Assembly: GCA_965649825.1 (NCBI GenBank)
Contig: OZ287700.1
Span: forward strand, 310,001-374,000
DNA: 64,000 bases
Source: Penicillus capitatus
Taxonomy: Eukaryota; Plantae; Chlorophyta
Direction: 5' to 3'
In this document: piece after piece, positions 1-44,694 of the stretch
Numbering within the stretch: position 1 is the stretch's first letter
How the letters are laid out: every line of letters starts with the position of its first letter
Program-made: the position numbers and the translations under genes
Notes under the pieces: generated by a model
What the model saw: only the letters and a program-made list of their open reading frames with translations
Databases searched by the model: none
What the model was told of the DNA's origin: nothing

Positions 1-17
1 CAGTGTGGCGGCTGTAG

Positions 18-191
18 ATCCATGAGGCCACGAATAACTTCGTCCTGATGGAAGGCAATCGTAGCCTGACGTTCCTCACACCGATGTCAGGAAATGAGCA
101 GCAATGGTTAGTCACACAGGTAAACACGGTTCTTGAGGACATTCGCAATCTCTGCTTGTCGCCTCTGGACACGATGGAAGAGGCCGTATAG
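18..191 (+). CDS. 3'-terminal exon of a gene that starts upstream of the window (unknown product)
   Basis: After an acceptor-like TGTAG (13-17) there is a 58-codon open frame, IHEATNNFVLMEGNRSLTFLTPMSGNEQQWLVTQVNTVLEDIRNLCLSPLDTMEEAV*, ending in TAG at 189-191. Confidence 0.45.
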   Translation: MHEATNNFVLMEGNRSLTFLTPMSGNEQQWLVTQVNTVLEDIRNLCLSPLDTMEEAV

Positions 192-7878: not shown

Positions 7879-10800
7879 ATGTCTCAGCGCAAAAGACACA
7901 CGACACGCGATCGGCCGTCGAAGCCTGACGCGATCGGATTCTTTCGGAACATTAGTCGACCGACGCCGAGATCGAATGGTCGTCCTCTCTTGGCCCTACG
8001 CGTCACAAGGCTTTCGTTGTGTCAGATGCTGCCCCGAGTCGCTTGCCGATGCGCACAACTACGACGACACGTGTGTGTCGCCAAGAACCTAATCTGGGAT
8101 CGTCCTCTGCAGCAGCCGCTGGTCTCGCTTTGGACCAACTCAAGAAGACCGCCGGTGCGTGGCTCTCGACGGATCTCGGCTTTCGACGCCACCCGATGAT
8201 GCGACTTCAGATCGAGTGGTCGAAGAACAGGAAAACGCGAAGCAATGCATCGCATCCTACGTCAGCCATTCTGTCGTTCCTGGCGACGGAGCATAATCTG
8301 AGCGCTGCTTTCCAGAAACTGCAGCTCGAGGAGAGCCAGAAATCGTTGGTGCACGCTGCGAGCGACCTCTCAAAGGAACGACGAGAGAATGCGGAACTCC
8401 AGGCCAAAGTCAAGGATGGTGATACTCGCCGCATCTCTTCGCCGAGGCCGAGGTTGCGAACGTGGGCTTAGACGAGCGGCAGATCCAGTTCGTTCGGGAC
8501 AAGATGTTGGTCGTGCAAGCCCTGCACGATGGATTGAAGGAAGACGTGGAAAAGACACAGGAGGAGCTGCAAAGAGGTGACGCGAACGGACAATGCCATG
8601 CGTGCCTGTTATAGATTCTCGATTCTGATAGTCCAGAAGATGCGTAATGTCTTGGCCCAGCGCTTTGAGCAGCAACTGCAACATGCCGAAGTGCCTAAAG
8701 AGCACACAAGCCTGGACTTCACGTTCCTCTTCTTCTCATAGGAGTTGGCGGAAAGTCACAGTCATTGGAAGAGTGAGAACTCTGATTTGGTCAGTAGACT
8801 CGGAGAAGGTGAGAAAAGGCAATGCGTGTGGGTGTCGTTTACTAAGTGGCTGGTGCAGCTTCGTCGCTGAATGAGAGGCTCAGGCGAGAGCTCGTCGAGG
8901 CCAATGAGAGTCTGGCACGCCTCCGACGCGCGCAGGATTCGATCGAACAGACACTCGTAAGTGATAGCCGTCAGCACGGCAAACACCATTCGCTGCTGAA
9001 GGAGGCCGAACGGACGGAGCATCAATTAAGAGTCGAAGAACTGATGGACGAGAAGCGTGACGACGTCGAAGCACTGAAAAAGACGAGAGATCGGCTCAGA
9101 GAGACAGAATTGAGGCTTCAGAGAGAGCATACTGACGTAGAAAAGCAAGCGAGAGAGATCCGCAAGGAATCGGAAAAGAAGATCGATCACCTGGGAGAGG
9201 AGTTGAAGATCGCCTTCAAGAAACACGCCACAGACGAGGCCGAACTGAAGCGCCTAAAAGAAGAGCTCGAATCGGCCGGTGTCGAATGCCGTCATTACGA
9301 ATACGAGCACCAAGTCCTCCATGCACCACCATGGAGAGCTTGTTACTGTTCTTGGTGACGCAGGCATCCGTTGCCAAGGTGGGAGAGATGACGAAAAGAC
9401 TGGAGTCTCTCACAAGAGAGCTGACTTGCAAGGCCGAGGAAGTGGAACGTATGGGAGATGAACTGGAAGCAACGAAAGGACAGCTGCAAGAAACGAAGGC
9501 CGAGAGGGACAGAACATCGGCCCTTGTTTTGCAGCTAGAGGAGGATAGGGTTGACTCTGGCTTTTCATGGCCGCGGGCTAAACTAGTTACTCCTTTCTCC
9601 AGGAGGTGGCGGAAGACGAACGCGATCGATCGCATGGAGCTTTGCAAGCGAAGGAGGAGCAACTCTCTTTACTGACACAGGAACTGCAGGCATACAAGGT
9701 ACCGTCATCGACACGCTTGCACTGCACAGGTGCTCTCTTTCATAGGAGGAAGCCCAAAAAAGGATCGCCGTTCTTGAGGCTGAAATTGCAGAGAAGGTCC
9801 GTCAGATCAACGAGAAAGAGGCTCTGGCAGAGACGGCGCGAGCGTTTGGCGAGAAAGAAATGCAAAGCTTCGCAGAGTCCACTGAAAAAGTGGGTCATGT
9901 AGACCACAATTGTTTGAGGAGCTGAATGATCGTCTGATGCAGGAGCTCGCCGCCATCCGAGAGAACAAGAAGAAAGAGATCAAACAGAGGACAGAAGCAG
10001 TATTATACTTTCCGTCCTCAGCTGGCAACTGCAGACTTGTTTGGTGCTAGCTGAACGCCGAAATCGATCGACTGAAAAGCGAGAGGGGGAGTTTCGATTC
10101 GAGGCTGGCGGAGATCGCAGCACAGAAGGAAGAGTACCAGCAGGCTCTAGCCAGTGCTCGACAGGAGAAGGAGAAGTGCGAAAAAGAGAGAGACGAATTG
10201 GAGGACAAGACAAAGGAATTGAAAGCAGCCCATCAGAAACGCATGCAGAAGGAGGAGAAACTTGTGAGACCCAGGCTATCGTCATCGCAGAGAATTCCTG
10301 TGCGATCCTCAGGTGCACGAAGTCGAGAAATTGAGGGGTCAGCTCAAGGAGGCGCTGGCCAGCTCAAGAGATATGGAACGGGAGTACGAAGAAAAATACG
10401 AGAGAGAGCTCGGGGAGATGTGTGACAAACTGAGACACGAGGAAGAGAGCAATGCAATGCTTGCCTCCGAATTGGCCGAAATCAAACAACAGCTGCAGGT
10501 GAGTAACCGCTGCACGATGATCCTCCTGTCACGCTGTGCCGTTCAGACAGTAGAGGCGGATAGGGATGCGTGCAGGACACGTCTGATTGAACTGGAGGCA
10601 GATTTGAAGAAGAGCGCGGTGGATGCTGAGAAGAACGCGCAGTTGATGCAGCAGATCTCTGAGAAGCAGAAGCAGACGATAGCGACGCCAGACCCGCTGT
10701 CAGATCCAACAGCCATTGCTAAGCAGCGGATCATCCAGCACACGTCCGAAATGAACAGCAAACGCGACAGATCTGCCCTGGAGAGCTCGAACTGCGCAGA

Positions 10801-11367
10801 GACCTCCAAAGTGAGCTCCATCGATGACCAGCCAAACGAGAAGATACCACGGAAGCCGAGAAAGTCTGGAAGAATCAAGAAGATGCGCAACGGTCCCAGT
10901 CCATCGGACAGTCAGACCGATAGCATGGAGAGGAGTGCCATTCGGACGCACTGGGTTCCTTCCCGATACTGGTGAAATCAAGTGAACGCACGCACGAAGG
11001 CAGTAGTAACATGGGTAACGTCGAGAACCCAATGGAAGGACGTTTGTTTTGTGCAACGGTTGGCGGATTTGAAACCCCGCCAGCAACGGCAATGTCTAGC
11101 GAAAGACGTTTCACATCGTCTCTCGATCCATCGGATGCATCGATCGAGTTCTCCGATCTCGATGACGGTCCTCTGTCGCGTTTGGTAACACTTCTGACAC
11201 GTGCTTCCAACGCGCGGCTGTGTATGGATGGCGGCAACTGCTTCCAAGCAATCGCTTTGCGAGCAGCAGATGATCACTCATCTGGTCGTCGTCCGACTGC
11301 CGACGCCTCGGATCCGTCTGTGGGATGTGACGTCATCCTAGCGATACGAGAATCACTTCACAGTTAA
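7879..11367 (+). CDS. Large multi-exon coiled-coil protein
   Basis: ATG at 7879 is followed by many E/K/R-rich heptad exons (LRRELVEANESLARLRRAQ; EKLRGQLKEALASSRDMEREYEEKYERELGE) split by short GT..AG introns, then an S/D-rich low-complexity tail. The 3' end is uncertain (10975 or 11367). Confidence 0.6.
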
Positions 11368-11405
11368 GGTCTTTCGTTTCTTGACTGCAGAAGTACTGTT
11401 CGCAA

Positions 11406-12383
11406 ATGTCGAGCTCCACGCGTGGGCTCCGACGGACACGAGGAAAGAGACTTCGTCGCGTCGTGGAGGAAGAACAAGAAGCGGATGACGAGTTCTGGGG
11501 ACAAGAGTTCTTTCAAGAAGACGAAGAGGACGTTCCCTATCTCACCGAGAGCGATCAGGAGTCCGTTGCCGACTCAGATTTCAGCAACTCGGTGTGACGC
11601 TCTCCTCCCTTACCCTTACCTCACGTCTTCACAACACAGGAAGCCGAAGAAGATGACCAGGACGAAGAGACCGAAGTCCAGCGGGAAAGGCCACAGTACG
11701 CTATCCAAAGAGTCGCTGCCGCACAGTGAGATCGATGCTGTGCCAGGAAGAAACGTTTGCTGCCGCCAGGGACGACCAAAAGGCGCCGAAGGCCTGCTGC
11801 GACCAAAAAACAGGCAGAGAATGGCGAACAGGAGAAGCCATCCTTCGAGATCTCGCCTGTGACGTTGCGACAGTCCACACTGCAGCGGAGAACGGCAGCC
11901 GAGGAGGAACGGCGTCTGCAACAGATGCAGCGAGCAAGGAGGCAGAACAAGACAAATGAGAGAGCCCCGACGATGGGACTGGAGGAATTCTTGAAGGAGG
12001 TTGTGGAGGTGGAGCTGACGAACCTGACATCTCTCAACGAACTGGAAGCCTTCGAAGAAGAGTCCAAGAAGCGGGCACTGCAGTCCAAAAGCAAAAAGAA
12101 GGGCGCTCACGTCATTCTTCGCTCGAGACGCGTCGGAGAGACGGAGAGGACCGTTCTGGAGGTCTCCCATTCGAAGCAGCTGCCAGAATGGCTACAGAGG
12201 AAAACAAAGCCGGAGCCCGCGGGGACACAGAAATGTGTGATAACTGGTTTGCCAGCGAAGTACAGAGATCCGCTCACGAAGCTGCCGTACGCAACGATGG
12301 AGGCATTTCGCGAGATTCGTCGTCGTACGAGTCAGCTGTCCGGCAGCGAGATTGTGCCAGGAGATGTGCTGCGATCGAACTAG
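11406..12383 (+). CDS. VPS72: SWR1 complex subunit VPS72/SWC2/YL1
   Basis: N-terminal R-x-TRGKR plus acidic DDEFWGQEFFQEDEED. The C-terminal YL1-C motif is CVITGLPAKYRDPLTKLPYATMEAFREIR. Confidence 0.9.
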
Positions 12384-13399: not shown

Positions 13400-16000
13400 G
13401 TTCGGTTTGTGCTTTGCAAATATAACACTGACAGCATGCGTGAAGACTACTAGCCTTGCTCGTTGCTTGTATTCTACGCTTCGTCAACTTCTCCCAACAA
13501 CATCGGCGACAACATGTTCATGTTTTTCGCGATCATTGCAACCGTGGCTAACAATGATGTTTCCTTTCTCAGAGAGATTACATGTCTATTTCAACTTTGT
13601 GTCGAAGTCTAAGAATATGACGCCTTGCGTATTATATGACAAGAAAGCCGAAGCTGGAAAGTCCACACAGAGTGCATACATCCTATGGGTTGTTACCGTC
13701 GTTTTGCACCTGCCAGACAAATCCGATAACTCTTTCAATCAAGGTTTTCACTGATGTCGCTGTTCACGGTTTGAGTCTCGGCATGCACTGAACTTCGTCG
13801 AAGTTCTAACTCCTGGATTGGTGCCATTCTATTCTCTTGGCTGTGAGTCACTAATCTGTACCGTCTAGCAAAATTGCAGACACCTATGATTCCCAAAACT
13901 GACTACCCTGTGCAGATACAATCTACTCCAACTTCCCGTTTGCACTTTATCGATTTCTATCGAGGCAGTACTAGTCTCTCATTAGATGACAAGACAACAT
14001 AAACCAAACTTCTGTATTGGTTTCAAACATCTTTTAGCAGGTTTCGCATGCTATACCCGTTGCTTTCTTTAAGCTTCACATCAGTTCAAAGACATGCATG
14101 CATGCCTTCAAATGCCCAAGAAACTCTATGGCGATGTTACAGACGTATTTTCAACGGCACACTTCCGAAGATATTACCTTCCAATAGTTTATCATCATCT
14201 GGTTCTACTTACATTTCAACAAACAATGTCATTGCTTTTCATGTCTTCCAAAATTACATTATCAGTTCTGCAAATAGAGTTTTCGTCGCGGATGCTGCAC
14301 AAAGAACATGCAAGGTATGCATTAAACCTGTTGGACTTTAGCTAACCGTGTGCAACGAACATGTCGCGCACAGCTTGTGCAATGCTCGTAGAACCTCACA
14401 TGGTTCGTTTTATCACCGTAAAGCCTGTTGCTATCATTTAGCATCTCTGTTTCCCAAATCACTAAATACTCATATCGTTGAAATCAGTTACGCCAAACGA
14501 TTAACTTTCCCTGTAAACCTTACTTATTTCCTTAATTAACATCATGTCACAGTATTTTGCCCGATGATCTGCTAAAAGACAGCTTATTGCTAATCGCAAT
14601 GAAAGGTGTGTTCCCAATCGTGACTACGAGAGTCTTTCTGTTAACACAAGAATTACATCTTCTAAAGTCTTGCACCGGATCTTACTCGTTTTCCTTGCTG
14701 CAGATGAAGGTAAGGATGTAATTAAGGCATTGTCAATCTGAAGGCGCTTATTCACGATTACCTCAAGACTTTAGGGAAATTGTCCTCTTCCAGCGAACTA
14801 ATTGTCGGATAATTTAGCCATCAATGATTCTGGACTTCCACGTTAAAAAGGAAGCTGTCATTTCTTCCGTGCGAATTTTGCAATGTCTTAATCGAGCTTC
14901 ACTGGTAACCTTCATTCCCTTTTCTTAACATTTGGTTAAGGCCATACGTAAATCCCCTCGATAAACTTCAATGGATGACGTTTCTCCAGATCGAATGCTT
15001 CAACTGTTGCTGTGTTTGCCGAACCCATGTAAATGTCCGTCTTCTATTTTCAAGGATCAAAAGTCTTTGGTGAATTCTGCGAGCATTTCCGGGTTTCTTA
15101 ATCAGTTTGTTGTTGGAGAGGACTTCCATGAGCGGTTTCGCAGCACATCTCCCCTTCTTTCACAAGTCGACAAGTCGAATAGGAAAAAACTTACTTCTCC
15201 GTTACTCGGTCCCAAGACAAAACCGAGTTCAAACGAATCGCCAAGAATTCGTCGCGAAGTAAAGCAAGTGGAACAAGATCTTCCGCTTAGTTCCATAACC
15301 TGCTAGGCCGTCTGGTGGACCCTCAACTCTTCTTTTTTGACACCGCCGAGACATGTATGTCCTGTTGATTGCACGTGATGTCCCAATCTCGTCTCGTCAC
15401 TTGATATATTGGTTTTGCAATACTCAATCAATGTATCAGAATGTTCTGTCGCAGTAAAGGTAAATCCAACGATCGACCAGTGTTTTCCCTCTAGGCGTGT
15501 ATGAAGTCGTTGTAACTTTTTTGTTCTTCCGCGAGTTAGGAATACCATAATTTCTAGCGGCCGACATACCAGGCACATTGCGATGACATCTGCTCTGTTT
15601 TGTGGCATGAATGAAACCTCACTCGGAACAGTTTTTTTATTGGATACACCGATTCTTGCTCCTATAGAAATGAATCTTGGAACTATTGCTCGTGTTCGTG
15701 TTGTTTGTTTCTTGTAACTGTTTGATTTGCACACGTTCTCACACGTTTTTCTGCATTGCAACCATGAACGCACCGAAGCGTCCAATCCACACACGGTGCG
15801 AAAGCATCCGAGCGGTCTGTTGTAGAGCGAGGGTTATACCATGTTGACGCATTTGTCGAAAGGTAGAGTCGTTAATGAATCCAAATGGGGTCCGTTTACG
15901 CCAAGACAACTCTCTAACATTAATAACAACTCTAAACTTGTGTTTCATTCGTCTGAGAGGGCCCTTGCGTCCACACAGAAGAACTTCAATAAGTTTTGTG
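13400..16000. other. AT-rich, CpG-poor, gene-free stretch (possible decayed transposon or foreign DNA)
   Basis: Visibly lower GC and fewer CpG than the flanking genes. It holds only short ORFs with no recognisable motif. Confidence 0.45.
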
Positions 16001-16049: not shown

Positions 16050-17260
16050 CTAATGATCATCGAGATGTTCGAGCATTAAGTTCGCTCTTTCCAAGTAAGG
16101 CGCCGCTTCATTCTCCCTTCCCATTCCTATCAAACAGTTGGCATAGATTCTGATGCAAAGGACGACGCTCGGGTGGGCCGCGTCCCCGTGAAGGCGCTCG
16201 CTCATCTCTAGGGCCCTCTTGTAGAGCGGCAACGCTTCGTCGATTCTCCCCGAATCTTTTAGCACCGCAGCATAGTTGTTGATGCAAAAGACGACACTCG
16301 GGTGGTCTGTGTCGCCGTATAGGCGCTCACTCATCTCCAGAGCTTGCTTGAAGAACGGCAACGCTTCATCAATTCTTCCCGCATATTTTAGCACGGCTGC
16401 ATAGTTGTTGATGCAAAGGACGACGTCCGAGTGGTCCGCGCCGCCGTGAAGGCGCTCGCTCATCTCTAGAGCTTGCTTGAAGAGTGGCAATGCTTCGTCG
16501 ATTCTTCCGGTATTTTGTAGACCAAAGGCATAGTTGTTGATGCAAAAGACGACGTTCGAGTGGTCTGCGTCACCATGAAGGCGTTTGCTCATCTCTAGAG
16601 CTTGCTCGAAGAGCGGCAATGTTTCATCGGTTCTTCCCGCATCTTTTAGCACGGCAGCATAGTTGTTGATGTAAAGGACGACGTTCGGGTGGTCTGCGTC
16701 GCCGTGAAGGCGCTCGCACATCTCTAGAGCCCTCTTGTAGAGCTGCAATGCTTCGTCGATTCTTCCCGTATCTTGTACACATAGGGCATAGTTTCCGATA
16801 GCAGTGACGACGCTCGGGTGGTCCGCGTCCCCGTGAAGGCGCTCGCACATCTCTAGAGCCCTCTTGTAGAGCGGCAGCGCTTCGTCGATTCTTCCAGCCT
16901 CATCTAGCCCAAAAGCATAGTTGTTGATGCAACGTTCGAGAGACGGATGATCTGAGTCGCCGTGAAGGCGCTCGCTCATCTCCAGAGCCCTCTTGTAGAG
17001 CTGCAATGCTTCGTCGATTCTTCCAGCATCTTGTAGACATAGGGCATAGTTCCCGATGTAAATGACGACGTCCGAGTGGTCCGCACCGCCGTGACGGCGT
17101 TCGCACATCTCTAGAGTCCGCTTGAAGAGCGGCAATGCTTCGTCGATTCTTCCCGCATCTTGTAGACTTAAGGCATAGTTGTTGTTACAGCGTTCGAGGG
17201 ACGGATGGTCCGCGTCGCCGTGAAGGCGTTCGCTTATCTCGAGGGCTCTTTGAGCGTAGG
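16050..17260 (-). repeat. Coding tandem array of 129-bp (43-aa) TPR repeats, 9 variable cassettes
   Basis: Consensus GRIDEALPL(Y/F)K(R/Q)ALEM(C/S)ERLHGDADH(P/S)xxxxxI(N/G)NYAxxLxxx, of the kinesin-light-chain/TPR_12 type. Confidence 0.95.
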
Positions 17261-20200
17261 AGATCGATTCTCGGGACATGCATATCTCTTTGTAGCCCTT
17301 TGACATATGTTTGAGTAACTCCAGTTCCACGCCGCTGTCCTTGCACTTTTCGCAGTTTTCAATGAGCGATAACCCGTTTCGTGCGAGCAAGGTCCATAGC
17401 TCTCTGTTCGAACGATCCGTTCTGAACTCGTTAGTATATTGGCCAATTGAATGCACTATGGTGTTGATGTGATCTTCAATCACACTCTTGTTTTGGTCGT
17501 CGGATTCTTGACTCCGGCCAGAACTCCTCTCATCGATGTCCAAGAGGAGGTGTTTCACAAGAAGTTGTGTATCTGCGTGCATGTAAATCTGGTTTGTTTG
17601 CTTGTTCCACGAGACATGAGAGAAACGCTCAAGGAGCCTCATGGAGTTCTCCGTTTTTGTCCGGGAGAGTTCATTCCCGGGTTCGTGCCACTTGTACACC
17701 CAATCGACGGGCACTCCGTTTGGATCGAGTAGCGCCAGCTTGGCGAGGAGATCGAGCGAGCACGGGCCTAAGTCATTGGGTTCTTTCGAGATCTTTTGCA
17801 CGCTCGAGTTGAATACGAAGACCATTCCAGTTGCGACTTCGCCGCTTCGCGTCGCGGAGAGCTTCGCTATCGTTTCGGCTTCCCGCGGTGTGAGTTTGTA
17901 CCGCAGCATACGTTGCACCCATTCGCCGGGGTTCCACACATCTTCGTCCCTCATCACGGAGAAGAACTGCGCGAGGGCCAGCGGAGTGCGAGGCAGCAGA
18001 TCCATCAAATCGTCCAGATCCTTCGACCGCAGTGACTTGGCACACTCAAATTTCTCGGCCAGAATCCGCGCTTCGATCTCGTCGAGCGGCTCGAGTCGAA
18101 CTGCGTTTCTTGCCCACTCGCTCGCTCCGCACTCTCTCGTCGCGACAATGACGTGTGCGCCTGCCAACGGAACGTACTCGCGAATCAGCTCGAGGTTCGG
18201 TGCGTCGTCGAAGACGTACAGACAGCGCGATCTTCCGAGCTTCTCTTGAACCCGTTTGACCAACTCTGGTGTGTCGTCGTCCGTGGGGATTTGAAGGTAT
18301 TCTGCGATCTGCAAGAACGCGAAAGTGATGCTCTCCCTTGAACTTGAAGGAATCCAGAACTCGTCGTCGTAGCTGCGTTTGCTTCTGAAGTAATCGAACA
18401 TCTTGATCGCTAGCTGGGTCTTTCCGATGCCTCCTGGGCCGACGATGGCCTTCACGACAACTGACTCGGAGCTCTCTGCGAAGGCTTCAACGATTTCTTT
18501 CAGCTTATCCTTCCTCCCGGCGAAGTAGCGGACAATGTCAGGCGAGGCCAAAGAGTGTTTCTTCTTCGGACTCAATCGAACTCCAGTAGTCGGAGTGGAC
18601 AGTTCGCCTTCGAGGCCCTTCCAGACTCGAAGAAACAGCTTGTCGCCGGATGTCTTGTCTTCGCCGGACGAAACCGAATCGATCTCTTGTTCGACTTTCT
18701 TCTCCCTCCGCCACTCGGACAGGGCTTCTTCGCAGGCTGCATTGTGCACGTTCGAAAGCAGTCTTTCCATAGCGTCGTGTGCTAGACGCTTTTCGTCTTC
18801 AAAACCTCGAGCGCATAACTCTTCAAGGTTATCGAGAAGCTCCAAAAACAGATCGGGGTCGCTAGACCAGTCCCATTCGTCCGTGCGCTCGACGAGGCTT
18901 GCTAGAGTCTCGGCGCTCGCTCTGCGGACATCTCCGTCCTCCCCATGGATAGCGAGCATGTTCAACATCTCTACCACGCCGAACCTCAGAGCCTTGCAGT
19001 GTTCGGAGCCGGACGCTCTTCCTTCCAGCACGAGAGAGGAGAAGATCCCGCTGAATACTTCGATAGCAGACGGATCTTCCATGGCTGCGAAGTGTGCGGC
19101 GTTGAGCGCATGGAGGCACTTACGCCACTGATCTTCACAAACGATTTCGCCGCGCCTCGCTTGTTGCATCGCTTGTAGCAGGGCCCGTTGCAGCGCCCTC
19201 GCCACGGACTCTACATTTCCGAGATCAAAGTCGAGATGCACCGCTTTTCTCAGCGCTCGATGGATGCCCGCCGTGCCGTAGAAAAGCTCGGCAACACGCC
19301 TAGCGCCACTCACATTGTGAGCGCCTCGCTTGGAGAACTGAGAAGAGGTCACGCTGTGTCGAACCAGCATCGCTTCGTACTTCATCGGATAGTACCCTGC
19401 GACGTCGATCACCTTCCGGCAATAGTCTAAGAGCTTAACTTCCAGTAGTCCTTCAGGCTCGTTAGGATCCAAATCGGCCGACCTGACCTCTCGAAGGATC
19501 CTCAAGCACTCGTGTGCAGCGTGCAGGGCGCTGCATTGTGCGGAAAACGTCTTTCTCGAGAAGCTTGCCTTTTCCGAATCGAGCTCATCTAGTAGGAAGT
19601 CGGCGAGCCGAACAAGACAGCTAGGATCGTCTTTGAAGATTTCGGCGTCGACCGTCAGAAGCGTAAGCTCAATCGCTTCCGTGAGATATCTGTTGCTCGG
19701 AGCCTCGGTGCACAGTTTGTCGCGGATGCTGTCGAAGAAGTCTTTGAGAAAGGGCAGATGTTCGCCGATAGCGCTGTCGAGTCTGCACAGGGCAAGGCAC
19801 TCACGGACCGCCGCTCCTCGATCGTCCGTCGCTTCTCCGACGTGCATGTCTCCGAAGGCACTGATGACCCTCCTTATCACTACTGCCAGTGCGAGTCTCT
19901 GCTCAGCGCCGTCCGCCTCGTTGAACGCTTTCACCACTTGTTCTAGGTTCTGGTACGATCCTTCGTGAAGAATCTTCCGGACGAGAGATCTCTCCATTGG
20001 AGTCAGAGCTCTTCCAGTCGCCGAACGAGAGACGCTGCTTTCGGCGGGAGTCTGGTTCCCGAGTGCATCGCTGCTGGATGAGGGTTCCCCGTTTCCGCCA
20101 CCCCAAAGTCCAAGATCTCCCAAGAAGATGAACCTCCCCGTGCCGCGAGTTGGATTGGACAGAATATGAATGCGGCGACGTGCAGCACTCCACGGCAGAC

Positions 20201-21196
20201 GGGCCAGACGGCGAATCGCTTCCTCAGGGTCTGAAAAACCCTTGCAGAAAAGCGGAACCGTTGTAGTCTTGGAGAACGGTCCCACTCGCTCCACAATCCT
20301 CCCGGCGAAATTCTCTCCTTTTCGAAAGATCTGGACGAGGCCAGTACCCTCGATCTCAAGCTCGCAGACTTCCTCAGAGTCCCCCTGAGTTAACAGTTGA
20401 AAGCTAGAACAGGAAGAAGAAGAGAGCACTTGTGTGCATGTGCGAGGCGTCTGAGAACGAGACAGTTCTGCACGATAGAAAGACGATCGAGGCATGTGAA
20501 CCGAAGAGAGGTTCCTAGCTGTCCTTCCCGTATGCACGCGCGATTTGCCGCGGTGAGTCAGTTCACGGTCGGGTCCTATAACGAAGACGCCTGATGAGGC
20601 TTCCCCGCGGCGGCGATGGCGAGGCACGATCGAAGGAAACGTCCTGGCGACACTGACAGGATCCCACATCTATCGAATGTGACATTGAAACACGAGACTT
20701 TGGCAGAGAGGTCGTCACCTTTGAAGCTGGGTAGACTCTGAACTGTTCAAGACCCGATGCGCATTCCCTGTTCCATGGGCCCTGATGGACATCATGCAAC
20801 TCGGATGAGGAAGTCTAGAAACGGATGGCACTCACCTCGACACGATGATACGGTTTGCGGTGCTCGCCGTCGACCACTTTTGCCCCCTCGAATCTTTTCT
20901 TCTGATAAAACGTGAAGTCCGCGTCTGCGACCGTCGCCGTCGTACGGATTCGGGTCGACACGCCTCCATCGGTAGCCGGCGAACGCACACACTGGAAACG
21001 CGAATCGTTGCAGTGCATGCGAATGTGTCAGGGAGGGCCTTACCGTCTCGACAAGTCGGCAGCAGTCTCCTTTTCTGCCTTGCTGTTTTGAGGGATGCGT
21101 ACAGGTGAAAGAACCGTCGCGCATTTCGACGATGCGCGGCGACGTGCCGTTGCTCTCGGCGACGTTCTGCTTACGGCGAGTGGTACGATTTTTCAT
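16050..21196 (-). CDS. NLR-like STAND NTPase, copy 1 (N-terminal beta/ARM-like domains, NB-ARC, TPR array), about 1,570 aa
   Basis: Walker A GPGGIGKT (about 18414-18443), Walker B CLYVFDDA, HVIVATRE, LPRTPLAL, QIYMHAD, and a 43-aa TPR array. The 4-exon model has phase-0 GT-AG introns: exons 21196-21044, 20991-20836, 20781-20719, 20384-16050. Intron positions are conserved in copy 2. Confidence 0.92.
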
Positions 21197-25886: not shown

Positions 25887-26431
25887 CGCGTTCCTCCGAT
25901 GGGATCTCTTGGCCCATCATACAGGAAAGCACGAGTTGATGGCTTCTGACATTGCACATGACATCGTGCTTCTTGTTGTTTCCACAAGATGGGACGTCAC
26001 ACAACTTGGCAGGGGGTATGAAGTCGCGTTGCATCAAAATGACCACACAAACAAACAAAAATTAAGAATCTGTTCACAAGTCTTTAGGACAATAAACGTT
26101 TCCACGATAGAACTTCGTGCCGACATCGGATGTGTTCTGTTCAGTATGTTACGATTGCAACGTCATATCATCGAAAGAAGGCGTCAAACGCCAACTAGCT
26201 CTTCATTTATCTGCGTGCGAGCTGTCTCCGTACTTCGAAGTCTACGAGGTAAGAAGGATTTGGCGTCATTGTTGAATTCACAGGTTATAGAAATTGAGTG
26301 TCTGTTACGCTTGAACTTTTCGTCACATTCGGACGAACCGCAGCCCACTCACAGTGTAATTCACGCTGACAGGTCATCGAAGATTCTTGACGACGCGTTA
26401 ATTGCTATATTTTGGAACGAACGACGATGCA

Positions 26432-27874
26432 ATGATTACCCATATCGTCAAGACGTGTGTCGTTTGCCGCAGAGCTGTTCTCGGGTCTTACCACGGAGTT
26501 CAATTGACCATCTGCTGCGCACAATGCTGTGAAAGCGCTCGTAAAGGCGACCAGCCAATGCCGGTTTTGCTGTCGGCGTCGTACATCGTGTTCGCCTCGT
26601 GCTGCAATGAATCAGACCTGCAGCACTTGCACTTCAAACTGAGAGACAGTTTGTCTGACGCAGAAGACCCCGGCCAGCGCCTCTACCTTACTCTAGAAGT
26701 CAGTTATGTGTCCCAAGTCGTCAAAATAGAGGAAAAGAAGAGGCAACAGAAGGAATTGCAGCAGCAACTGCTGAAAAGAAAACCGGAACGTCGAATGGAA
26801 TGTGTCGTCTGCAGCAGAGCTGTTCTCGGGTCCTACTACGGAGTTCAATTGACTATCTGCTGCGCACAGTGCTGTGAAAGCACGCGGAAAGGAGTTCGGC
26901 CAATGCCAGCTTTGCTGCCCGCGTCGTACATCACCTTTGCATCGTGCTATAATGAATCAGACTTGCAGCACTTGCACTTCAAACTGAGAGACAGTTTGTC
27001 TGACGCAGAAGACCCAGACCAGCGCCTCTACCTTGCCGCAGAGGTGCGTTATGTGTCCCAAGTCGTCAGAACGGAGGAACTGCATGAGAAAATGCTCAGA
27101 AGGAAGCAAGAGCTTCTGACGCAGCTGCACATCACAAATGATCAGCTCGCTGGTGGAAACAGAGTCTTGTGGAATGTCCTTCTCGGCGATTACTTGAAGC
27201 GCAAAGCACCACAGACAGAGCTCGCTTCTGTTCTTGAGCGTTTCGCCGAATTGAACCGTGCGACAGAGATTCTGAAGGCCAATCCCTGTGCGAATCCTGA
27301 AGCTGTGTTTGACTTCTGCTTGAGCAACCCCGAAGGCGGTCCAGAAGAATTCAGAGAACTGAAGACGAAAGTCTGTTCGGTTTTCCGACTGGAGGGTCCG
27401 AGAATCTTCCAGCATCTGACAGATCTGGAGATCGCGCGGTTGATCGGCACGCCGCTCGAAGAAGAGGCACGAAGACTAGGAGGGGATGCGGTTTCTCGGC
27501 ACCTCGTCCTACGTCATCTTCGCAAACAGGTCGGATACCTGTTGGCCGAGGAGATCATGGCAGATCCTCTCTGTCAACGGTACTTCAAGGCAGGCAAGGA
27601 CGAATCCAAGATTGCCTACGAGATGCTGGAATGCTGGGGATGGATCCTTAAACGGAATGAGAGGAGAGTGAAGATGGAGAAGGCCTTTTTCTCCAGACGG
27701 CTTCCTACGCCTAGGAATTCTATTCGTTGCACTTGGTATGTTGAACACAAAATGGACTACGATCCTGACGAACTCGTTTCTCTGCACTACCCCTTGAACC
27801 TCTTAGGACTCTTGGATGGACAGGACAGAGGTCTGGCAAGAGAACCAGCCCTGCTGTTACCTTTGCTCGGTTGA
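26432..27874 (+). CDS. Intronless Cys-rich protein with two tandem XPA-like Zn-finger modules; paralog of 4294..5253
   Basis: About 480-aa uninterrupted ORF from ATG 26432. It has two CVVC-x15-CCAQCC...QRLYL..EV.YVSQV modules, and its C-terminal half aligns with the 319-aa paralog. Confidence 0.78.
   Translation: MITHIVKTCVVCRRAVLGSYHGVQLTICCAQCCESARKGDQPMPVLLSASYIVFASCCNESDLQHLHFKLRDSLSDAEDPGQRLYLTLEVSYVSQVVKIEEKKRQQKELQQQLLKRKPERRMECVVCSRAVLGSYYGVQLTICCAQCCESTRKGVRPMPALLPASYITFASCYNESDLQHLHFKLRDSLSDAEDPDQRLYLAAEVRYVSQVVRTEELHEKMLRRKQELLTQLHITNDQLAGGNRVLWNVLLGDYLKRKAPQTELASVLERFAELNRATEILKANPCANPEAVFDFCLSNPEGGPEEFRELKTKVCSVFRLEGPRIFQHLTDLEIARLIGTPLEEEARRLGGDAVSRHLVLRHLRKQVGYLLAEEIMADPLCQRYFKAGKDESKIAYEMLECWGWILKRNERRVKMEKAFFSRRLPTPRNSIRCTWYVEHKMDYDPDELVSLHYPLNLLGLLDGQDRGLAREPALLLPLLG
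26456..27075 (+). repeat. Internal tandem duplication (period 345 bp) of the Zn-finger module
   Basis: Copies start at 26456 (TGTGTCGTTTGCCGCAGAGCTGTTCTCGGGTC) and 26801 (TGTGTCGTCTGCAGCAGAGCTGTTCTCGGGTC), with long identical runs such as CAGCACTTGCACTTCAAACTGAGAGACAGTTTGTCTGACGCAGAAGACCC. Confidence 0.92.
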
Positions 27875-33455: not shown

Positions 33456-33536
33456 GCGACATTATTTAGGAACACGACTGATGCGACATTATTTAGGAAC
33501 ACGACTGATGCGACATTATTTAGGAACACGACTGAT
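33456..33536. repeat. Perfect 27-bp tandem repeat x3
   Basis: GCGACATTATTTAGGAACACGACTGAT at 33456, 33483 and 33510, with no spacers. Confidence 0.97.
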
Positions 33537-36090: not shown

Positions 36091-37430
36091 TTAATTTTCA
36101 CTAAGACGTTCGAGCATTTCGTTCGATCTTTGCAAGTAAGGCGATGCTTCGTTGATTCTTCCTGCTTTTCCTAGCGCATCAGCATAGTTGTTGATGCAAC
36201 GGTAGAGCGACGGGTGGTCCACATTGCCGTAAAGGCGCTCGCACATATCAAGAGCCCGCTTGTGGAGCGGCAGTGCTTCGTTGATTCTTCCCGCAGCTTG
36301 TAGCCCAAAGGCATAATTGTTGATGCGAATAACGAGGTCTGGATGGTCCGCGTCGCCGTGGATGCGCTCGCTCATATCAAGAGCCCGCTTGTAGAGCGGC
36401 AGTGCTTCGTTGATTCTTCCCGCAGCTTGTAGCCCAAAGGCATAATTGTTGATGCAACGTTCGATGTCCGGATGATCCGCGTTGCCGTGAAGGCGCTCGC
36501 ACATATCAAGAGCCCGCTTGTGGAAAGGCAGTGCTTCGCTGATTCTTCCCATGTCGTTTAACATTCCAGCATAGTTCCCAATGCGAATGACGATGGACGG
36601 GTGGTCTGCGTCGCCGCGAAGGCGCTCGCACATATCAAAAGCCCGCTTGTAGAGCGGCAGTGCTTCGTTGATTCTTCCCGCGTCGTGTAGCACAAGAGCA
36701 TAGTTGTTGATGCAACGTTCGATGTCCGGATGATCCGTGTCGCCATGGAGGCGCTCGCACATATCCAGAGCCCGCTTGTAGAGCGGCAGTGCTTCGTTGA
36801 TTCTTCCCGCCTCTTTTAGCCCAAAGGCAAAGCTCCCGATGCGAGTGACGAGGGACGGATGGTCCGCGTCACCGTGAAGGCGCTCGCACATATCCAGAGC
36901 CCGCTTGTAGAGGGGCAATACTTCTTTGATTCTTCCCGCAACGTGTAGCCCAAGGGCATAGTTATTGATGCAACGTTCGCTGTCGGGATGGTCCGCGTCG
37001 CCGTGGAGACGCTCGCACATATCAAGAGCCCGCTTGTAGAGCGGCAGTGCTTCGTTGATTCTTCCCGCGTCTTGTAACACAAGAGCATAGTTGTTGATGC
37101 AACGTTCGATGTCCGGATGATCCGCGTCGCCGTGGAGGCGCTCGCACATATCCAGAGCCCGCTTGTAGAGCGGCAGTGCTTCGTTGATTCTTCCCGCCTC
37201 TTTTAGCCCAAAGGCATAGTTGTTGATGCAACGTTCGATGTCCGGATGATCCGCGTCGCCGTGGAGGCGCTCGCACATATCCAGAGCCCGCTTGTAGAGC
37301 GGCAGTGCTTCGTTGATTTTTCCCGTGTCTTGTAGCACAAGCGCATAGTTGTTTATGCTATTGGCGAGGGACGGATGGTCCGCGTCGCCATGAAGGCGTT
37401 CGCACAGCTCGAGGGCTCTTTGAGCGTAGG
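36091..37430 (-). repeat. Coding tandem array of 129-bp (43-aa) TPR repeats, 10 variable cassettes
   Basis: Consensus GRINEALPLYKRALDMCERLHGDADHP(D/S)xxxxINNYAxxLxxA. Confidence 0.95.
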
Positions 37431-40400
37431 AGACCGCCTCTCGAAACATGCATATCTCTTTGTAGGCCTCTGACATATATTTGAGTAACTCCAGTTCCAC
37501 GCTGTTGTCCTTGCACTTTTCGCAGTTTTCTAGGAGCGATAACCCGTTTCGTGCGAGCAAGGTCCATAGCTCTCTGTTCGAACGATCCGTTCTGAACTCG
37601 TTAGTATATTGGCCAATTGAATGCACTATGGTGTTGATGTGATCTCCAATTGCATTCTTGTTTTGTTCTTCGGATTGTTGAGTCTGGCTGGAACTGCTTT
37701 CATCGATGTCTATGAGGAGGTGCTTGGCTAAAAGTTGTGTATCTGCGTGCATGTAGATCTGGTTCGTTTCCTTGTCCCACGAGACATGAGCCAAGCGTTC
37801 AAGAAGCCTCATGGAATTCTCCGTTTTTGTCTTGGAAGATTCATCTTCGAGTTCGTGCCACTTGTACACCCAATTGGCGGGTACTCCATTTGGATCGAGA
37901 AGAGCCAGCTTGGCGAGAACATCGAGCGAGCGCGGGCCTAGGTTGTTTGGTTCTTCCGAGATCCTTTGCACGCTCGAGTTGAATACGAACACCATTCCAG
38001 TTGCGTCTTCGCCGCTTCGCCTCTCGGAAAGCTTTGCTATCGCTTCTTCTTCCCGCCTTGTGGCTTTATACTGTAGCATACGTTGCGCCCATTCACCGGG
38101 TCTCCACAGATCTTCGTCCCTCATCACGGAGAAGAACTGCACGAGGGCGAGTGGAGTTCGAGGCAGCAATTCTATCAAGTCGTCCAAATCCCCCGACTGT
38201 AGTGCTTTGGTACATTCAAATTTCTTCGCTAGAATCAGCGCTTCGACTTCGTCGAATGGCTTGAGTCGAATCGCACTGCTTTCCCACTCACTCTCTCCGC
38301 ACTCTCTCGTCGTGACGATGACATGTGCCCCTGCCGGCGCAACGTACTCGCGAATCAGCTCGAGGTTCGGTGCGTCGTCGAAGACGTACAAACAGTGCGA
38401 TCTTCCGAGCTTTTCTCGAACCCGTTTGACTAACTCCGGTGTGTCGACGTCGACGGGAACTCTGAGATATTCCGCGATTTGCACGAACGCGGCGGTGATG
38501 CTTTCCCTCAAGCTCGAGGGAATCCAGAACTCGTTGTCGTAGCTGTGTTTGCTCCTGAAGTAATCGAACGCCTTTATCGCGAGCTGCGTTTTGCCGATGC
38601 CGCCCGGGCCTACGATAGCTTTCACGACAACTGAGTCGACGTTCGCTGCGAAGGCATCGACGATTTCGCTAAACTCCTCCTTCCTCCCGGCGAAGTAGCG
38701 GACAATGTCAGGCGAGGCCAAAGAGTGTTTCTTCTTCGGCCGCGGGAGAACTCCAGTCGTCGGAGTGGACAGTTCTCCCTCGAGGCTCTTCCAGACTCGA
38801 AGAAACAGCTTGTCGCCGAATGTCTTGTCTTCGCCGGGCGAGGCCGAATCGATATCTTCCTCCTCTTTCTTCTTCCTCCGCCACTCGGACAGTGCTTCTT
38901 CACATGCCGGGTTATGCACGTTTGAAAGCAGTCTTTCCATGGCGTCGTGTGATGCACTCTTTTCGTCTTGAAAACCTCGAGCGCATAACTCTTCAAGGTT
39001 ATCGAGAAGCTCCAAAAACAGATCGGGGTCGCTAGACCAGTCCCACTCGTCAGTGCGCTCGACGAGGCTTGCTAGAGTCTCGGCGCTCGCTCTTCGGACA
39101 TCTCCGTCCTTCGCGTGGATGGAGAGCATGGTCAACATCTCCACCACGCCGAACCTCAGAACCTTGCAGTGTTCGGAGTCGGACGCCCTTCCTTCGAGCA
39201 CGAGATAGGACAGGATCTCGCTGAACACTTCAAACGCAGACGGATCTTCCATGACCGCGAAGTGTGCGGTGTTGAGCGCATGGAGGCACTTACGCCACTG
39301 ATCTTCACAAACGATTTCGCCGCGCCTCGCTTGTCGCATCGCTTGTAGCAGGGCCTGTTGCAGCGCCCTCGCCACGGACTCCGCATTTCCGAGATCGAAG
39401 TCGAGATGCACCGCTTTTCTCAGCGCTCGATGGATGCCCGCCGTGCCGTAGAAGAGCCCGACAAAGTGTTTTGCGTTGCTCACATTGTGGGCGCCTCGCT
39501 TGGAGAACTGAGAAGAGGTCACGCTGTGTCGAACCAGCATCGCTTCGTACTTCATCGGGTAGTACCCCGCGACGTCGATCACCTTCCGGCAATAGTCTAA
39601 GAGCTTAACTTCCAGTAGTCCTTCAGGCTCGTTAGGATCCAAATCGGCCGACCTGACCTCTCGAAGGATCCTCAGGCACTCGTGTGCAGCGTGCAGGGCG
39701 CTGCATTGTGCGGGAAACGTCTTTCTCGAGAAGCTTGCCTTTTCCGGATCGAGCTCATCTAGTAGGAAGTCGGCGAGCCGAACAAGACAGCTAGGATCGT
39801 CTTTGAAGATTTCGGCGTCGACCGTCAGAAGCGTAAGCTCAATCGCTTCCGTGAGATATCTGTTCTCGGGAGCGTCGGTGCACAGTTTGTCGCGGATGCT
39901 GTCGAAGAACTCTTTGAGAAAGGGCAGATGTTCGCCGGTAGCTCTGTCGAGTCTGCACAGGGCAAGGCACTCACGGACCGCCGCCCCTCGATCGTCCGTC
40001 GCTTCTCCGACGTTCATGTCTCCGAAGGCACTGAGGACCCTCCTTATCACTACTGCCAGTGCGAGTCTCTGCTCAGCGCCGTCCGCCTCGTTGAACGCTT
40101 TCACCACTTGTTCCAGGTTCTGGTACGATCCTTCGTGAAGAATCTTCCGGACGAGAGATCTCTCCATTGGAGTCAGAGCTCTTCCAGTCGCCGAACGAGA
40201 GACGCTGCCTTCGGCGGGAGTCTGGTTCCCGAGTGCATCGCTGCTGGATGAGGGTTCCCCGTTTCCGCCACCCCAAAGTCCAAGATCTCCCAAGAAGATG
40301 AACCTCCCCGTGCCGCGAGTTGGATTGGACAGAATATGAATGCGGCGACGTGCAGCACTCCACGGCAGGCGGGCCAGACGGCGAATCGCTTCCTCAGGGT

Positions 40401-41363
40401 CTGAGAAACCCTTGCAAAAAAGCGGAACCGTCGTAATCTTCGAGAACGGTCCCATTCGCTCCAAAATCCTCCCCGCGAACTTCTCCCCTGCTCGAAAGAT
40501 CTGGACAAGACCATTGCCCTCGACCTCAATCTCACAGATTTCCTCGCAATCTCCCTGAGTAAAAAGGTAAAGGTAGAACGAGAACAAGAAGAGAGCATTT
40601 GTGTGCATACCCGAGGAATCTCGGTGCGAGGTAGTTCTACTCGACGGAAAGACTGTCGAGGCGAGTGAATCGAGGACAGGTTCCAAGCTGTCGTACCTCG
40701 CGACCGCGCACGAAATTTTCCTCTGGGAGTCAGTTCACAGTCGAGTCCTTTGAAGAAGACGCCTGGTGTGGCATTCCATCGGCGGCGATAGTGAGACGCG
40801 AGTAAGGGAAACGTCCTCGCGACGCTAACAGAATCCCACATCTGTCGAACGCGGCACTGAAACACGAGTCTTCGGCAGAGAGTTCGTTACCTTTGAAGCT
40901 GTGTAGAAGCTGAATTGGCTCGAACCCGGTGTGCACTCCCTGTGGCGAAGGCCCTGATGGACAGCATGCAACTATGATGGCAGGTTTCGAACAGTCGGCG
41001 ATTACCTGGACCAGACGAGGCGGTTTGCGGCGCTCGTCGTCAATCACCTTTGTCCCCTCGGAGATTTTCATCCGGTAAGGCTTCCAGTCCGCGCCGGCTA
41101 CCGGTCCCGTCGTACGGATTCCAGTCGACACGCCTCTATCAGTAGTCGGCGAACGTACGCACTGGAGACGCGAATCGTTGCAGAGCGTGTGAATATGTCA
41201 GGGGCCTTACCGTTTTCGCAAGTCTGCAGTAGTCTCCTTCTTTGCCTGGCCATTCGGAAGTTTTCCCGGAGGAGAGAGAACCGTCGCACATCTCCCCGAT
41301 GCGCGGCGACGCGCCGTTGCTTTCGGCGACGTTGCGAAGACGACGATATGCACAATTCTTCAT
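36091..41363 (-). CDS. NLR-like STAND NTPase, copy 2 (same architecture, one more TPR), about 1,610 aa
   Basis: Walker A GPGGIGKT, CLYVFDDA, HVIVTTRE, LPRTPLAL, QIYMHAD. ATG at 41363; three phase-0 introns at the same positions as copy 1; large exon 40554-36091. Confidence 0.92.
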
Positions 41364-42894: not shown

Positions 42895-44694
42895 ATGTCT
42901 TCGTCGCGTCGATATGAACGCGAGCGTCATGAGTATCACGAGCGGCGCCGCCATTCAGAGCGCTACAGAGAATCGAGACAGTAAGCCTAGGCCCAAACCA
43001 CTCTCTGGTACTCGTTTCCCGGTCCCCGAGAGCGCTAATGTCGCCTCCGCCCATCTGATAATCTGTATCTTCTAGCGAACGATACGAAGACGACACGAGG
43101 GGCGATGCGCGAAGGAGAGAACGTTTCCAGAGAAGACACTCTCGAGAACGCCATCGCAGTCGCAGTCGCTCTCCTCGGCGTCCCATCGAGGAGAGAAGGC
43201 ATTCCAATCCCGCGACCAGAAAAATGCAGGACCCTGCTTTTCGGTCTATGGTCATGGAGGCATTGAAAGAGCGAAACCTGCTAACGCAGCTCGGCCACTC
43301 CACAGCAGAGGATGACGTCATGGAGCCCGGTCAGCATCGGAGCCCGAATTCAAAGGCGTCCACTGAGGAAATCGCCACGGCGAAGACGGAAGAGACCGAT
43401 GCAGACAACGACTCCATGGCCGGTAGCAGAATTCGCTGTCTGGCAGCAGAGGGCAGCCGCAGCTGTTCTCTTAGATGTACCGGTGGAAGAGACGCGTGAC
43501 TTGGAAGAGCGCGTGGTCGCTGCAGACGCGCCGTTGCGCAGTCCTTCGCCAGAAGAGCCCTCCACTGTACAAGACATCCACCCGCCAGGGTGCTGCACCA
43601 TCTACTGCTTGGCCTCCCTCTGATCTCACGACAACGCGTGCGCAGATTGCACGAAGCCCGGATGATCGATCATTACGAGTTCATGTCCAACATCTCCCAG
43701 GGAACCTATGGCATCGTCTACATGTAGCCCGTCATCCCTACCCGTTCGGATGCACCGAGCATCGACGGTGTGTTCTCTCAGGGGCAAGTGTTTGAAGACG
43801 GATACCTACAAGGCCTTCAAACGCGTCAAGAAGCAGAAGAAGGATGGACGTCCCGAAGCGTTCCCCCTCACCTCTCTCCGCGAGATCAACATCCTCACGA
43901 GCCTGCGCCATCCCAACATCGTAGGACTGCAGGAGGTGTGCCTGAGCAGAGGCAGAGGGATTCTCAAAGTGATGGACTACGCCGAATACGATCTCAAACG
44001 CGTGCTGGAGATGAAGAAGGACTCGTTCTCTGCGTCTGAGTGCAAGTGCATCGTCAAGCAGATCCTCCAAGCCCTGCACTTCCTGCACGACCATTGGATC
44101 ATGCATCGGGATCTGAAGCCGTCGAACATTCTGTACGATGGCAGGGGTAACATCAAACTGTGCGACTTCGGACTGGCTCGGCATTTCGGTGAACCGCTGG
44201 GGCGCTACACACCACTTGTGGTCACGCTTTTCTACAGAGCACCAGAACTGCTGCTGGGAGCCGAGACCTATTCCCCTGCCATCGACATGTGGTCACTCGG
44301 CTGCATCTTCGCCGAAGTGCTGTTGGGACATCCGCTCTTCCGGGAGACAACCGAGATCGCCATGCTGTCAAAGATTCTGAGCACCGTCGGCGAACCGACG
44401 GCCGAGTCGTGGCCGGAATTCGAATCCCTGCCCAACGCCAAGAGCATTCAGTTGACGGGCGAGACCGAGAACACACTGCCACGGATGTTCTCCTCTGGCT
44501 ACGCCGTATCCGGTCCTGAACTGCTGACCCGACAGGGGGTCCAGTTTCTCTGTGGACTCCTTGCACTCAACCCAGCAAAGCGACTGACAGCGGCGGAGGC
44601 ATTGGATCATGAGTATTTTCGAGAGTTTCCTCCTCCCTGTCACCGACGTCTCTTGCCGACATTCGTCGATCCCCAGCGGAACAAATTTCATTAA
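42895..44694 (+). CDS. CDKG: Cyclin-dependent kinase G / CDK11 (PITSLRE) family
   Basis: RS/RE-rich N-terminus; ISQGTYGIVY; FPLTSLREINIL; HRDLKPSNIL; DFGLAR; VVTLFYRAPELLLG; DMWSLGCIF. Confidence 0.92.

Follow-up and report, generated by a model that had tools for sequence, protein, structure and literature searches.

A 43-residue TPR array in an NB-ARC gene of a siphonous green alga: old mosaicism among its units and variability on one predicted helix face

The G1 gene, its repeat array and its relatives

The 64,000-nucleotide stretch of contig OZ287700.1 analysed here (the window; coordinates refer to it unless another contig is named) carries two tandem paralogs, G1 and G2, whose products combine an NB-ARC ATPase with tetratricopeptide repeats (TPR), in the manner of the NOD-like receptors (NLR) among the signal transduction ATPases with numerous domains (STAND). 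The subject of this report is the TPR array of G1 (array 1), encoded on the minus strand at the 3' end of the G1 open reading frame (ORF) and described in an earlier note (the original prediction) as hypervariable cassettes shuffled as half-repeat modules. Array 1 is probably the TPR superhelix with which an NLR-like STAND protein of a bryopsidalean alga senses its ligand. Features and their positions are collected in Table 1.

Pfam places NB-ARC at aa 720-912 of G1 above the gathering score (39.1 bits, cutoff 23.5) and finds at least eight TPR_12/TPR_10 repeats (TPR_12, 269 bits, E 1.2e-81; TPR_10, 215 bits, E 3.5e-65), together with a match to TPR_NPHP3. The motifs GPGGIGKT, LYVFDD, VIVATR and LPRTPLAL are near-invariant in an alignment of 17 family sequences (relatives have VIVTTR), as is the histidine of IYMHAD/E, which is equated with the MHD histidine by position only; as read from these motifs, the STAND ATPase set of G1 appears intact. 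The N-terminal region, about 600 aa, is conserved in the family; nothing was found by Pfam in the first 700 residues of G1, no match to the region among PDB sequences, and only weak alpha-solenoid (ARM/HEAT-like) matches by Foldseek, none at E<=0.001. G1 is carried by one contig only (ENA ERZ25074695 ctg340500, 1.17 Mb, 39x).

Table 1 Features of G1 and G2, secondary structure of the 43-aa unit, and loci of a pair of sister genes. AF2, AlphaFold2; pLDDT, predicted local distance difference test; TRF, Tandem Repeats Finder.
Feature	Position	Strand	Basis or remark
G1, uninterrupted 1539-aa ORF, NB-ARC-TPR (NLR-like STAND) gene	16050..20669	-	ORF list, Pfam
N-terminal region: small beta-rich domain, disordered linker, ARM/HEAT-like helical region (predicted)	18525..20387	-	AF2, pLDDT 59.8
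NB-ARC ATPase with winged-helix region	17565..18512	-	Pfam match and motif positions
P-loop GPGGIGKTQLA (Walker A)	18408-18440	-	Motif position
Walker B CLYVFDDAP	18198-18224	-	Motif position
Sensor-1-like HVIVATRE	18132-18155	-	Motif position
GLPL-like LPRTPLALAQ	17967-17996	-	Motif position
MHD-like IYMHADTQ	17565-17588	-	Motif position
Helices before array 1, N-terminal cap, aa 1100-1134	17268..17372	-	AF2 helices H2-10, H13-29, start of H33-51
Array 1, nine tandem 129-bp/43-aa TPR units A1.0-A1.8	16107..17267	-	TRF period 129, in-frame register
C-terminal capping half-unit AAPYLERANLMLEHLDDH, 18 aa, then stop codon	16053..16106	-	In-register translation; final helix in AF2 model
Helix A	unit positions 22-37		AF2 model
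Loop after helix A	unit positions 38-40		AF2 model
Helix B	unit positions 41-43, then 1-16 of next unit		AF2 model
Loop after helix B (B-to-A)	unit positions 17-21		AF2 model
G2, 1531-aa tandem paralog of G1	36091..40686	-	ORF list; ~20.17 kb from G1
G2 array, ten 43-aa units	36148-37437	-	TRF and register
Sister genes P0008/P0017	L003 6001-11166, L008 3001-8970		Same contig, ~21 kb apart

Two 129-bp arrays are reported by TRF in the window, at 16151-17240 (8.4 copies, 78% matches, score 1185) and at 36145-37406 (9.8 copies, 82% matches). Read in frame, the first gives the nine units of array 1 in a strict 43-aa register (G1 aa 1135-1521, window 17267 down to 16107), coded by a single uninterrupted open frame of 1161 nt; units share 62-88% of their nucleotides, and mean pairwise amino acid identity is 0.66-0.69. 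The scaffold GRIDEALPLxKxALEMxERLHG is near-constant across units, as had been noted, and every string quoted for the two variable blocks is found in the translation: SLERC (twice), DVVIY, SVVTA, NVVLY, NVVFC, DVVLC and SVVFC in the left block (unit positions 23-27); ALSLQDA, ALCLQDA, AFGLDEA, ALCVQDT, AAVLKDA, AFGLQNT, AAVLKYA and AAVLKDS in the right block (unit positions 32-38). To that list a ninth unit, SVVLC/ANCLIGM, is to be added. The pairings are also present as given there, AAVLK with three left blocks and AFGL with two. The two blocks are the two ends of helix A, with a conserved I-N-N-Y-A core between them.

The AF2 model, which covers G1 aa 1100-1539, has a pLDDT of 91.7, a predicted template modelling score of 0.85 and 21 alternating helices. 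By sequence and fold the nearest solved structures are the TPR domains of kinesin light chain (KLC; E 2.6e-27; Foldseek template modelling score 0.77-0.78 to KLC1, normalised to target). The 43-residue period is strict in all 17 family members (17/17), whereas that of KLC is 42, the extra residue lying in the loop after helix B; array 1 thus does not have the 42-residue period of KLC-type TPRs ('42PR'). Variability along helix A is one-sided (variability moment, p=0.014 in G1 and p=0.003 family-wide), with positions 22/23, 26, 29/30, 33 and 37 on the variable face and 24, 28, 31, 32 and 35 on the conserved face; helix B, treated likewise, has no one-sided pattern. Positions variable family-wide (26, 29, 30, 33, 36, 37) correspond, in our own mapping, to canonical TPR positions 2, 5, 6, 9, 12 and 13. 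KLC-type TPRs have helices A along the concave groove and helices B along the convex face (PMC5642895), and the earlier claim that the variable sites sit in the groove-lining helix agrees with the model, in which they would occupy one face of helix A. At unit position 5 (e.g. 17253-17255 in unit 0), G1 has tyrosine or phenylalanine in eight units and alanine in unit 0.

Compared with 5.8 billion proteins, the non-TPR part of G1 recovered only 15 relatives, all from long metagenome contigs, and one weak actinobacterial match. The family is present in at least three related genomes (39x and 344x in ERZ25074695, ~170x in ERZ26696514), with 7-21 units per member as called by a hidden Markov model built from array units. 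In the ~170x genome the locus of member P0003 is syntenic with the window (kinase, NLR, NTPase_1, YL1, 573-aa ORF); a single NLR gene is present there, as against two in the window. When the NB-ARC region was used for a full HMMER scan, few relatives above 50% identity and a second tier at 31-38% emerged. The nearest NB-ARC relatives outside the family (P0142, P0145, P0148, P0163) carry Bacteroidota labels of metagenome-assembled genomes and could be real bacterial homologues or mis-binned algal DNA; since their contigs measure 1.6-4.6 kb, no conclusion on horizontal gene transfer is drawn. PADLOC returned generic TPR models only. NCBIfam NF040586 (FxSxx-COOH system TPR protein) is matched by G1 at 312 bits (cutoff 300), the best stretch lying in the TPR region, and a Dactylosporangium protein shares 30% identity with the P-loop region. 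Membership in the FxSxx-COOH system was not adopted; the match is mainly to TPR, and the locus is eukaryotic, flanked by a CDK-like kinase, YL1 and NTPase_1.

The host was placed with two markers. Cluster P0021, to which Caulerpa lentillifera g7896.t1 belongs, shares 75% identity with the CDK-like kinase of the window (43708-44694), against ~49% for the closest named proteins of fungi, plants and algae. For FEN1, taken from a sister genome, identity is 68% with Caulerpa lentillifera, 61% with Bryopsis, 58-60% with other green algae and 57% with land plants. These identities place the host among the siphonous green algae, in the Bryopsidales, nearer to Caulerpa than to Bryopsis or Ostreobium. 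The fungal framing of the original prediction is accordingly abandoned, and a fungal origin was rejected, the best fungal kinase matches standing at ~47-51% against 75% for the cluster with Caulerpa. HSP90 fragments of locus L006, also considered as a marker, were too broken by introns or frameshifts, and FEN1 was used.

Recombination and selection among the units

The pairwise homoplasy index (PHI) gives p=0.001 for array 1, and p=0.0002-0.003 with same-codon pairs excluded. Codon-model simulations without recombination on the fitted tree never reach the observed PHI ratio (0/150), and PHI is significant in 3-4% of them; on purely synonymous columns array 1 offers 3-4 informative sites, too few for PHI. 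Site compatibility decays with distance, as expected from unequal crossing-over or gene conversion between misaligned units. Over all nine units, left and right nucleotide distances give a Mantel r=-0.21, under all 150 simulations (mean 0.37); over the seven internal units r=0.20, within the no-recombination null. Taken over eight arrays, the right block is linked to the stretch behind it (r=0.45-0.57, p=0.001), where the C-terminal scaffold and codons 1-22 of the following unit make up helix B; the corresponding values are r=0.27 for left against right block and r=0.16 for the preceding scaffold against the left block. This pattern indicates that units are mosaics, with linkage weakest across the helix-A core and the B-to-A loop.

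Of the proposal that two blocks recombine freely, the recombination itself is retained and the linkage partly fits two blocks; assortment is not free, and its appearance hinges on the edge units. AAVLK has left partners (NVVLY, DVVLC, SVVFC) that differ only at 1-3 variable residues and are therefore weak evidence of recombination; the AFGL pairings (SLERC vs NVVFC) are the informative examples. Divergence between units (dS ~0.5) gives no sign of ongoing shuffling. Cassette shuffling in array 1 is real as old mosaicism.

Comparison with the paralog and with the syntenic ortholog concerns the same units. The G1/G2 duplicated segment extends to about 21207/41374; outside the arrays the two genes are 86% identical in amino acids and 90% in nucleotides, with dN/dS 0.32. 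Non-repeat dS averages 0.22; it rises to 0.59 at codons 600-700 and falls to 0.03 at aligned codons 100-300 (G1 window 19488-20087), where the low value suggests a recent gene-conversion tract between G1 and G2. G2 is a possible exchange partner of the G1 array. Unit A1.2 is 87% identical to G2 unit A2.1, and for internal units no 1:1 counterparts between G1 and G2 were found. Of the units of array 1, the first and the last alone have a match in P0003, the syntenic ortholog (0.75 and 0.81), a pattern usually left when unequal exchange turns over the inner units.

Comparisons between units by the Nei-Gojobori method (NG86) give dN/dS of 0.23-0.26 for the scaffold of array 1, 0.81-0.93 for the two variable blocks combined, 1.2-1.6 for the left block (5 codons only) and 0.64-0.67 for the right block, at an overall inter-unit dS of ~0.5-0.6. 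Purifying selection acts on the scaffold, made up of helix B, the loops and the buried face of helix A, with dN/dS in the wider range 0.23-0.30, and heterogeneous constraint across the codons of array 1 is strongly supported. Among the codon models M0, M1a and M2a, with likelihoods from our own code, the best for array 1 puts 58% of codons at omega 0.14 and the other 42% at omega 1, without a further class; M2a does not improve on M1a over nine units (likelihood ratio 0.0, p=1) or over the seven internal units (1.07, p=0.58). In a minimal-change count, groove codons chosen a priori change at a rate ratio of 0.86 to synonymous change (p=0.72). The original prediction had expected positive selection at the variable sites of array 1 and had named dN/dS of 1 or below as evidence to the contrary; omega there is about 1, not above it. 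Its more general statement, that TPR repeats of fungal NLRs are under positive selection on the groove face, agrees with PMC4986451.

Other members of the family behave differently. M2a is preferred over M1a in P0008 (p=2.6e-4; sites 5, 36; dS 0.010), in P0014 (p=0.009; sites 5, 26; dS 0.036; at 38-39x, the coverage of the window's own contig) and in P0003 (p=5e-4; site 26); in G2 the result is suggestive only (p=0.15; sites 26, 33, 36, 37), and in P0005 and P0006 it is not significant. Outside the array, P0008 shares 97.6% of its nucleotides with its tandem paralog P0017; the two have 15 and 21 TPR units, respectively. Their scaffold codons are almost invariant in nucleotides, and codons 5, 26, 30, 33 and 36 each have 3-7 states, which differ by multiple nucleotides; position 18 is aspartate through most of one array and glycine throughout the other, a sign of array-specific homogenisation. 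In sister arrays of the same and of related genomes, scaffolds are near-identical, unit numbers run from 7 to 21, and omega exceeds 1 at a few codons with multiple states. The active, positively selected and concertedly evolving state is found in these sister arrays, not in array 1; array 1 is an old family member, not recently homogenised, with inter-unit dS ~0.5 and variable codons at omega ~1.

Readings of array 1 and related systems

The reading given at the outset, a ligand-sensing superhelix, would work as follows, each step being modelled on other NLRs: a ligand would bind the TPR groove and release the autoinhibition of NB-ARC; the NB-ARC switch would then be followed by oligomerisation; and the signal would pass through the N-terminal module. 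By the same analogy the family may serve non-self or altered-self recognition.

The closest known system is that of the fungal NLRs with repeats of high internal conservation (HIC), such as the Podospora NB-ARC-TPR protein Pa_2_10340, HET-Z/PaPLP1 and HNWD, which carry TPR, ANK or WD repeats (PMC4986451; PMC13449251). These repeats have hypervariable concave TPR positions, repeat-number polymorphism and positive selection (Dyrka et al. 2014, PMC4986451), and self-similar hypervariable-repeat NLRs have been reported across every domain of life (2026 survey). The algal family shares with them a NOD ATPase followed by a C-terminal array of near-identical superstructure-forming repeats with a KLC-type TPR flavour, few hypervariable positions on the binding face, changing repeat number, exchange within and between paralogs, and positive selection, here in sister arrays only. 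It differs in the green-algal host, the 43-residue unit, an N-terminal module that is not a known fungal effector domain and the lack of a known context of repeat-induced point mutation; array 1 itself differs in the 66-69% identity of its units and in showing no omega >1.

Measured against the HIC definition of Dyrka 2014 (identity >=85% over >=100 aa), array 1 falls short at 0.66-0.69, whereas the sister arrays P0008, P0011 and P0017 reach 0.86-0.94; a consensus-identity proxy for Psim, not a T-REKS value, is 0.78 in array 1 (HIC threshold >=0.7, PMC13449251), the corresponding figure for P0014 having been set aside as apparently faulty. Repeat-number variation and exchange are found (7-21 units; 15 vs 21 in tandem paralogs; PHI). 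Diversifying selection is not supported for array 1 and is indicated in P0008, P0014 and P0003, where recombination may inflate the tests.

Several points weigh against a ligand-sensing, diversifying array. Omega above 1 is not supported for array 1, and relaxed constraint on an exposed face explains its variation equally well. The orientation of the variable face towards the predicted groove is derived from helix identity and homology, not from measured coordinates. The codon that varies most in the young sister arrays, and is most strongly 'selected' there, is unit position 5, which lies in helix B, on the expected convex side. The N-terminal module is, to judge by its model, without a recognisable effector fold. 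The putative immune or recognition role is drawn from analogy alone. The codon tests on the sister arrays presuppose a tree, and recombination is known to produce false positives in them, so that selection in these arrays is read as supportive, not decisive; the 8 nonsynonymous against 0 synonymous minimal changes in P0008 are small counts.

Best placed among the alternatives, though on balance unlikely, is a passive old array shaped by ancient unit duplications, ordinary substitution and relaxed constraint on exposed helix-A residues; the 'cassettes' would be surviving unit lineages, with no diversity-generating process and no special binding code. Inter-unit dS in array 1 exceeds that of the G1/G2 duplication (0.22), and unit types such as xxERC + AFGL are present in G2 as well, so that they predate the duplication. 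The two-class codon model, with its share of codons at omega 1, speaks for the same alternative, as do the groove-codon rate ratio below 1 and the point changes that alone separate the left partners of AAVLK. It is opposed by the failure of simulations without recombination to reproduce the PHI signal, by internal units without positional orthologs, and by sister arrays with concerted evolution and omega >1 at the same positions.

A fixed-function scaffold in the manner of KLC or nephrocystin-3, each repeat having its own conserved role and partner and its position-specific differences, is improbable. The KLC TPR domain (PDB 3NF1, 6FUZ, 3ZFW) has the motif logic HP-x-[VL]-A...LNNLA...G-[KR]-x-x-EA...AL-x-I seen here, and its helices A line the cargo groove; this affinity of structure, the TPR_NPHP3 match, and the retention of first and last units between species are what the scaffold would predict. 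KLC, unlike the array 1 family, has six fixed, orthologously conserved repeats and no ATPase; here the array is fused to NB-ARC, internal units lack positional counterparts in paralog and ortholog alike, and copy number varies from 7 to 21 in the family and from 15 to 21 between paralogs otherwise 97.6% identical.

Still less probable is programmed or somatic diversification, in which cassettes would be reshuffled between the nuclei of the coenocyte or during development (cf. Ectocarpus TPR exons, lamprey VLRs). The host is a multinucleate siphonous alga, the units are mosaics, and the same proposal has been put forward for the NB-ARC-TPR genes of brown algae (PMC3341825). Against this, dS ~0.5 implies slow turnover on a germline scale; the array is one continuous ORF with no flanking donor cassettes or intron-delimited units; TRF detects no third 129-bp array in the window beyond those of G1 and G2, shorter unit fragments not having been searched; and a single 39x HiFi contig was assembled cleanly through the array. 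In Ectocarpus, shuffled 42-aa TPR exons and an exon-shuffling mechanism were described and proposed, respectively (Zambounis et al. 2012, PMC3341825). That system resembles the present one as an algal NB-ARC-TPR family with repetitive TPR units, blurred paralogy, limited or weak signs that these units are positively selected, and a proposed role as pathogen receptors; it differs in having one phase-0 exon per unit, 42 aa and a stramenopile host, as opposed to one ORF, 43 aa and a chlorophyte.

A collapsed or chimeric repeat is hardly credible: the source is a metagenome assembly, judged by the metaMDBG-style contig name, but units differ at 12-38% of nucleotides, far more than HiFi errors would produce, the 4.6-kb reading frame is unbroken, and the same architecture recurs in independent assemblies.

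The bacterial NF040586 protein likewise has NB-ARC followed by TPR_10/TPR_12 repeats; it is set apart by the eukaryotic context and low NOD identity of G1, and no FxSxx-COOH partner was seen, none having been searched for. In the literature searched no paper links NB-ARC-TPR genes with Bryopsidales, one green-algal NB-ARC paper covering APAF1_C/WD40 and NBS-LRR, and the family is apparently undescribed in this lineage.

Filamentous fungi are the best-known source of self-similar, hypervariable-repeat NLRs, some of which control incompatibility at cell fusion there. We tentatively consider it possible, though doubtful, that siphonous green seaweeds have a lineage-restricted NB-ARC-43PR receptor family with a novel N-terminal module, concerted evolution and diversifying selection, convergent with the fungal HIC NLR/het-gene system. 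Such a family, dispersed and in tandem in giant multinucleate green algae, would give these receptors a second syncytial lineage and may serve non-self recognition at wounding, cytoplasm fusion, or invasion by endophytes or viruses. The questions raised are whether the receptors police cytoplasmic mixing or infection, and whether a conserved scaffold with a shuffled hypervariable face has arisen convergently. A natural 43-residue TPR variant and an N-terminal module without an assigned fold are added to the known repertoire, and array 1 itself gives a caution, that cassette shuffling can be visible where a signature of positive selection is not measurable.

Neighbouring features of the window

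A 5' leader-like peptide, MWDxVSVARTFP..., is encoded in frame with the main ORF in G1 and, on comparison of 40173-40865 with the G2 ORF (36091-40686), in another frame in G2; G2 may start further downstream, contain an intron or carry a 5' frameshift. The spacer between G1 and G2 holds a perfect 27-bp tandem repeat of 3.0 copies (GCGACATTATTTAGGAACACGACTGAT; 33456-33536). Two direct copies of 279 nt, 87% identical and 345 nt apart, lie at 26456-27079 inside a 490-aa ORF (26402-27874, plus strand) that has no Pfam match; its product seems to be an internally repetitive protein. In ten further large ORFs of the window Pfam identified a CDK-like kinase only, and scans of the window for Rfam families and tRNA genes found nothing. 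GC content is 0.417 just downstream of G1 (14001-16000) against ~0.52 elsewhere in the window, and AT skew is unusually strong (+0.21 to +0.24) over 8001-12000.

In the ERZ26696514 assembly one FEN1 copy (L005 15837-22320, ctg303693) is split between XPG_N and XPG_I by an insertion of ~5.2 kb, which carries a 660-aa ORF and an 880-aa endonuclease/reverse-transcriptase ORF (similar to long interspersed nuclear elements); 'ECQRLL' is encoded at both edges. An intact FEN1 (P0289), 99% identical to the split copy, is present on another contig.

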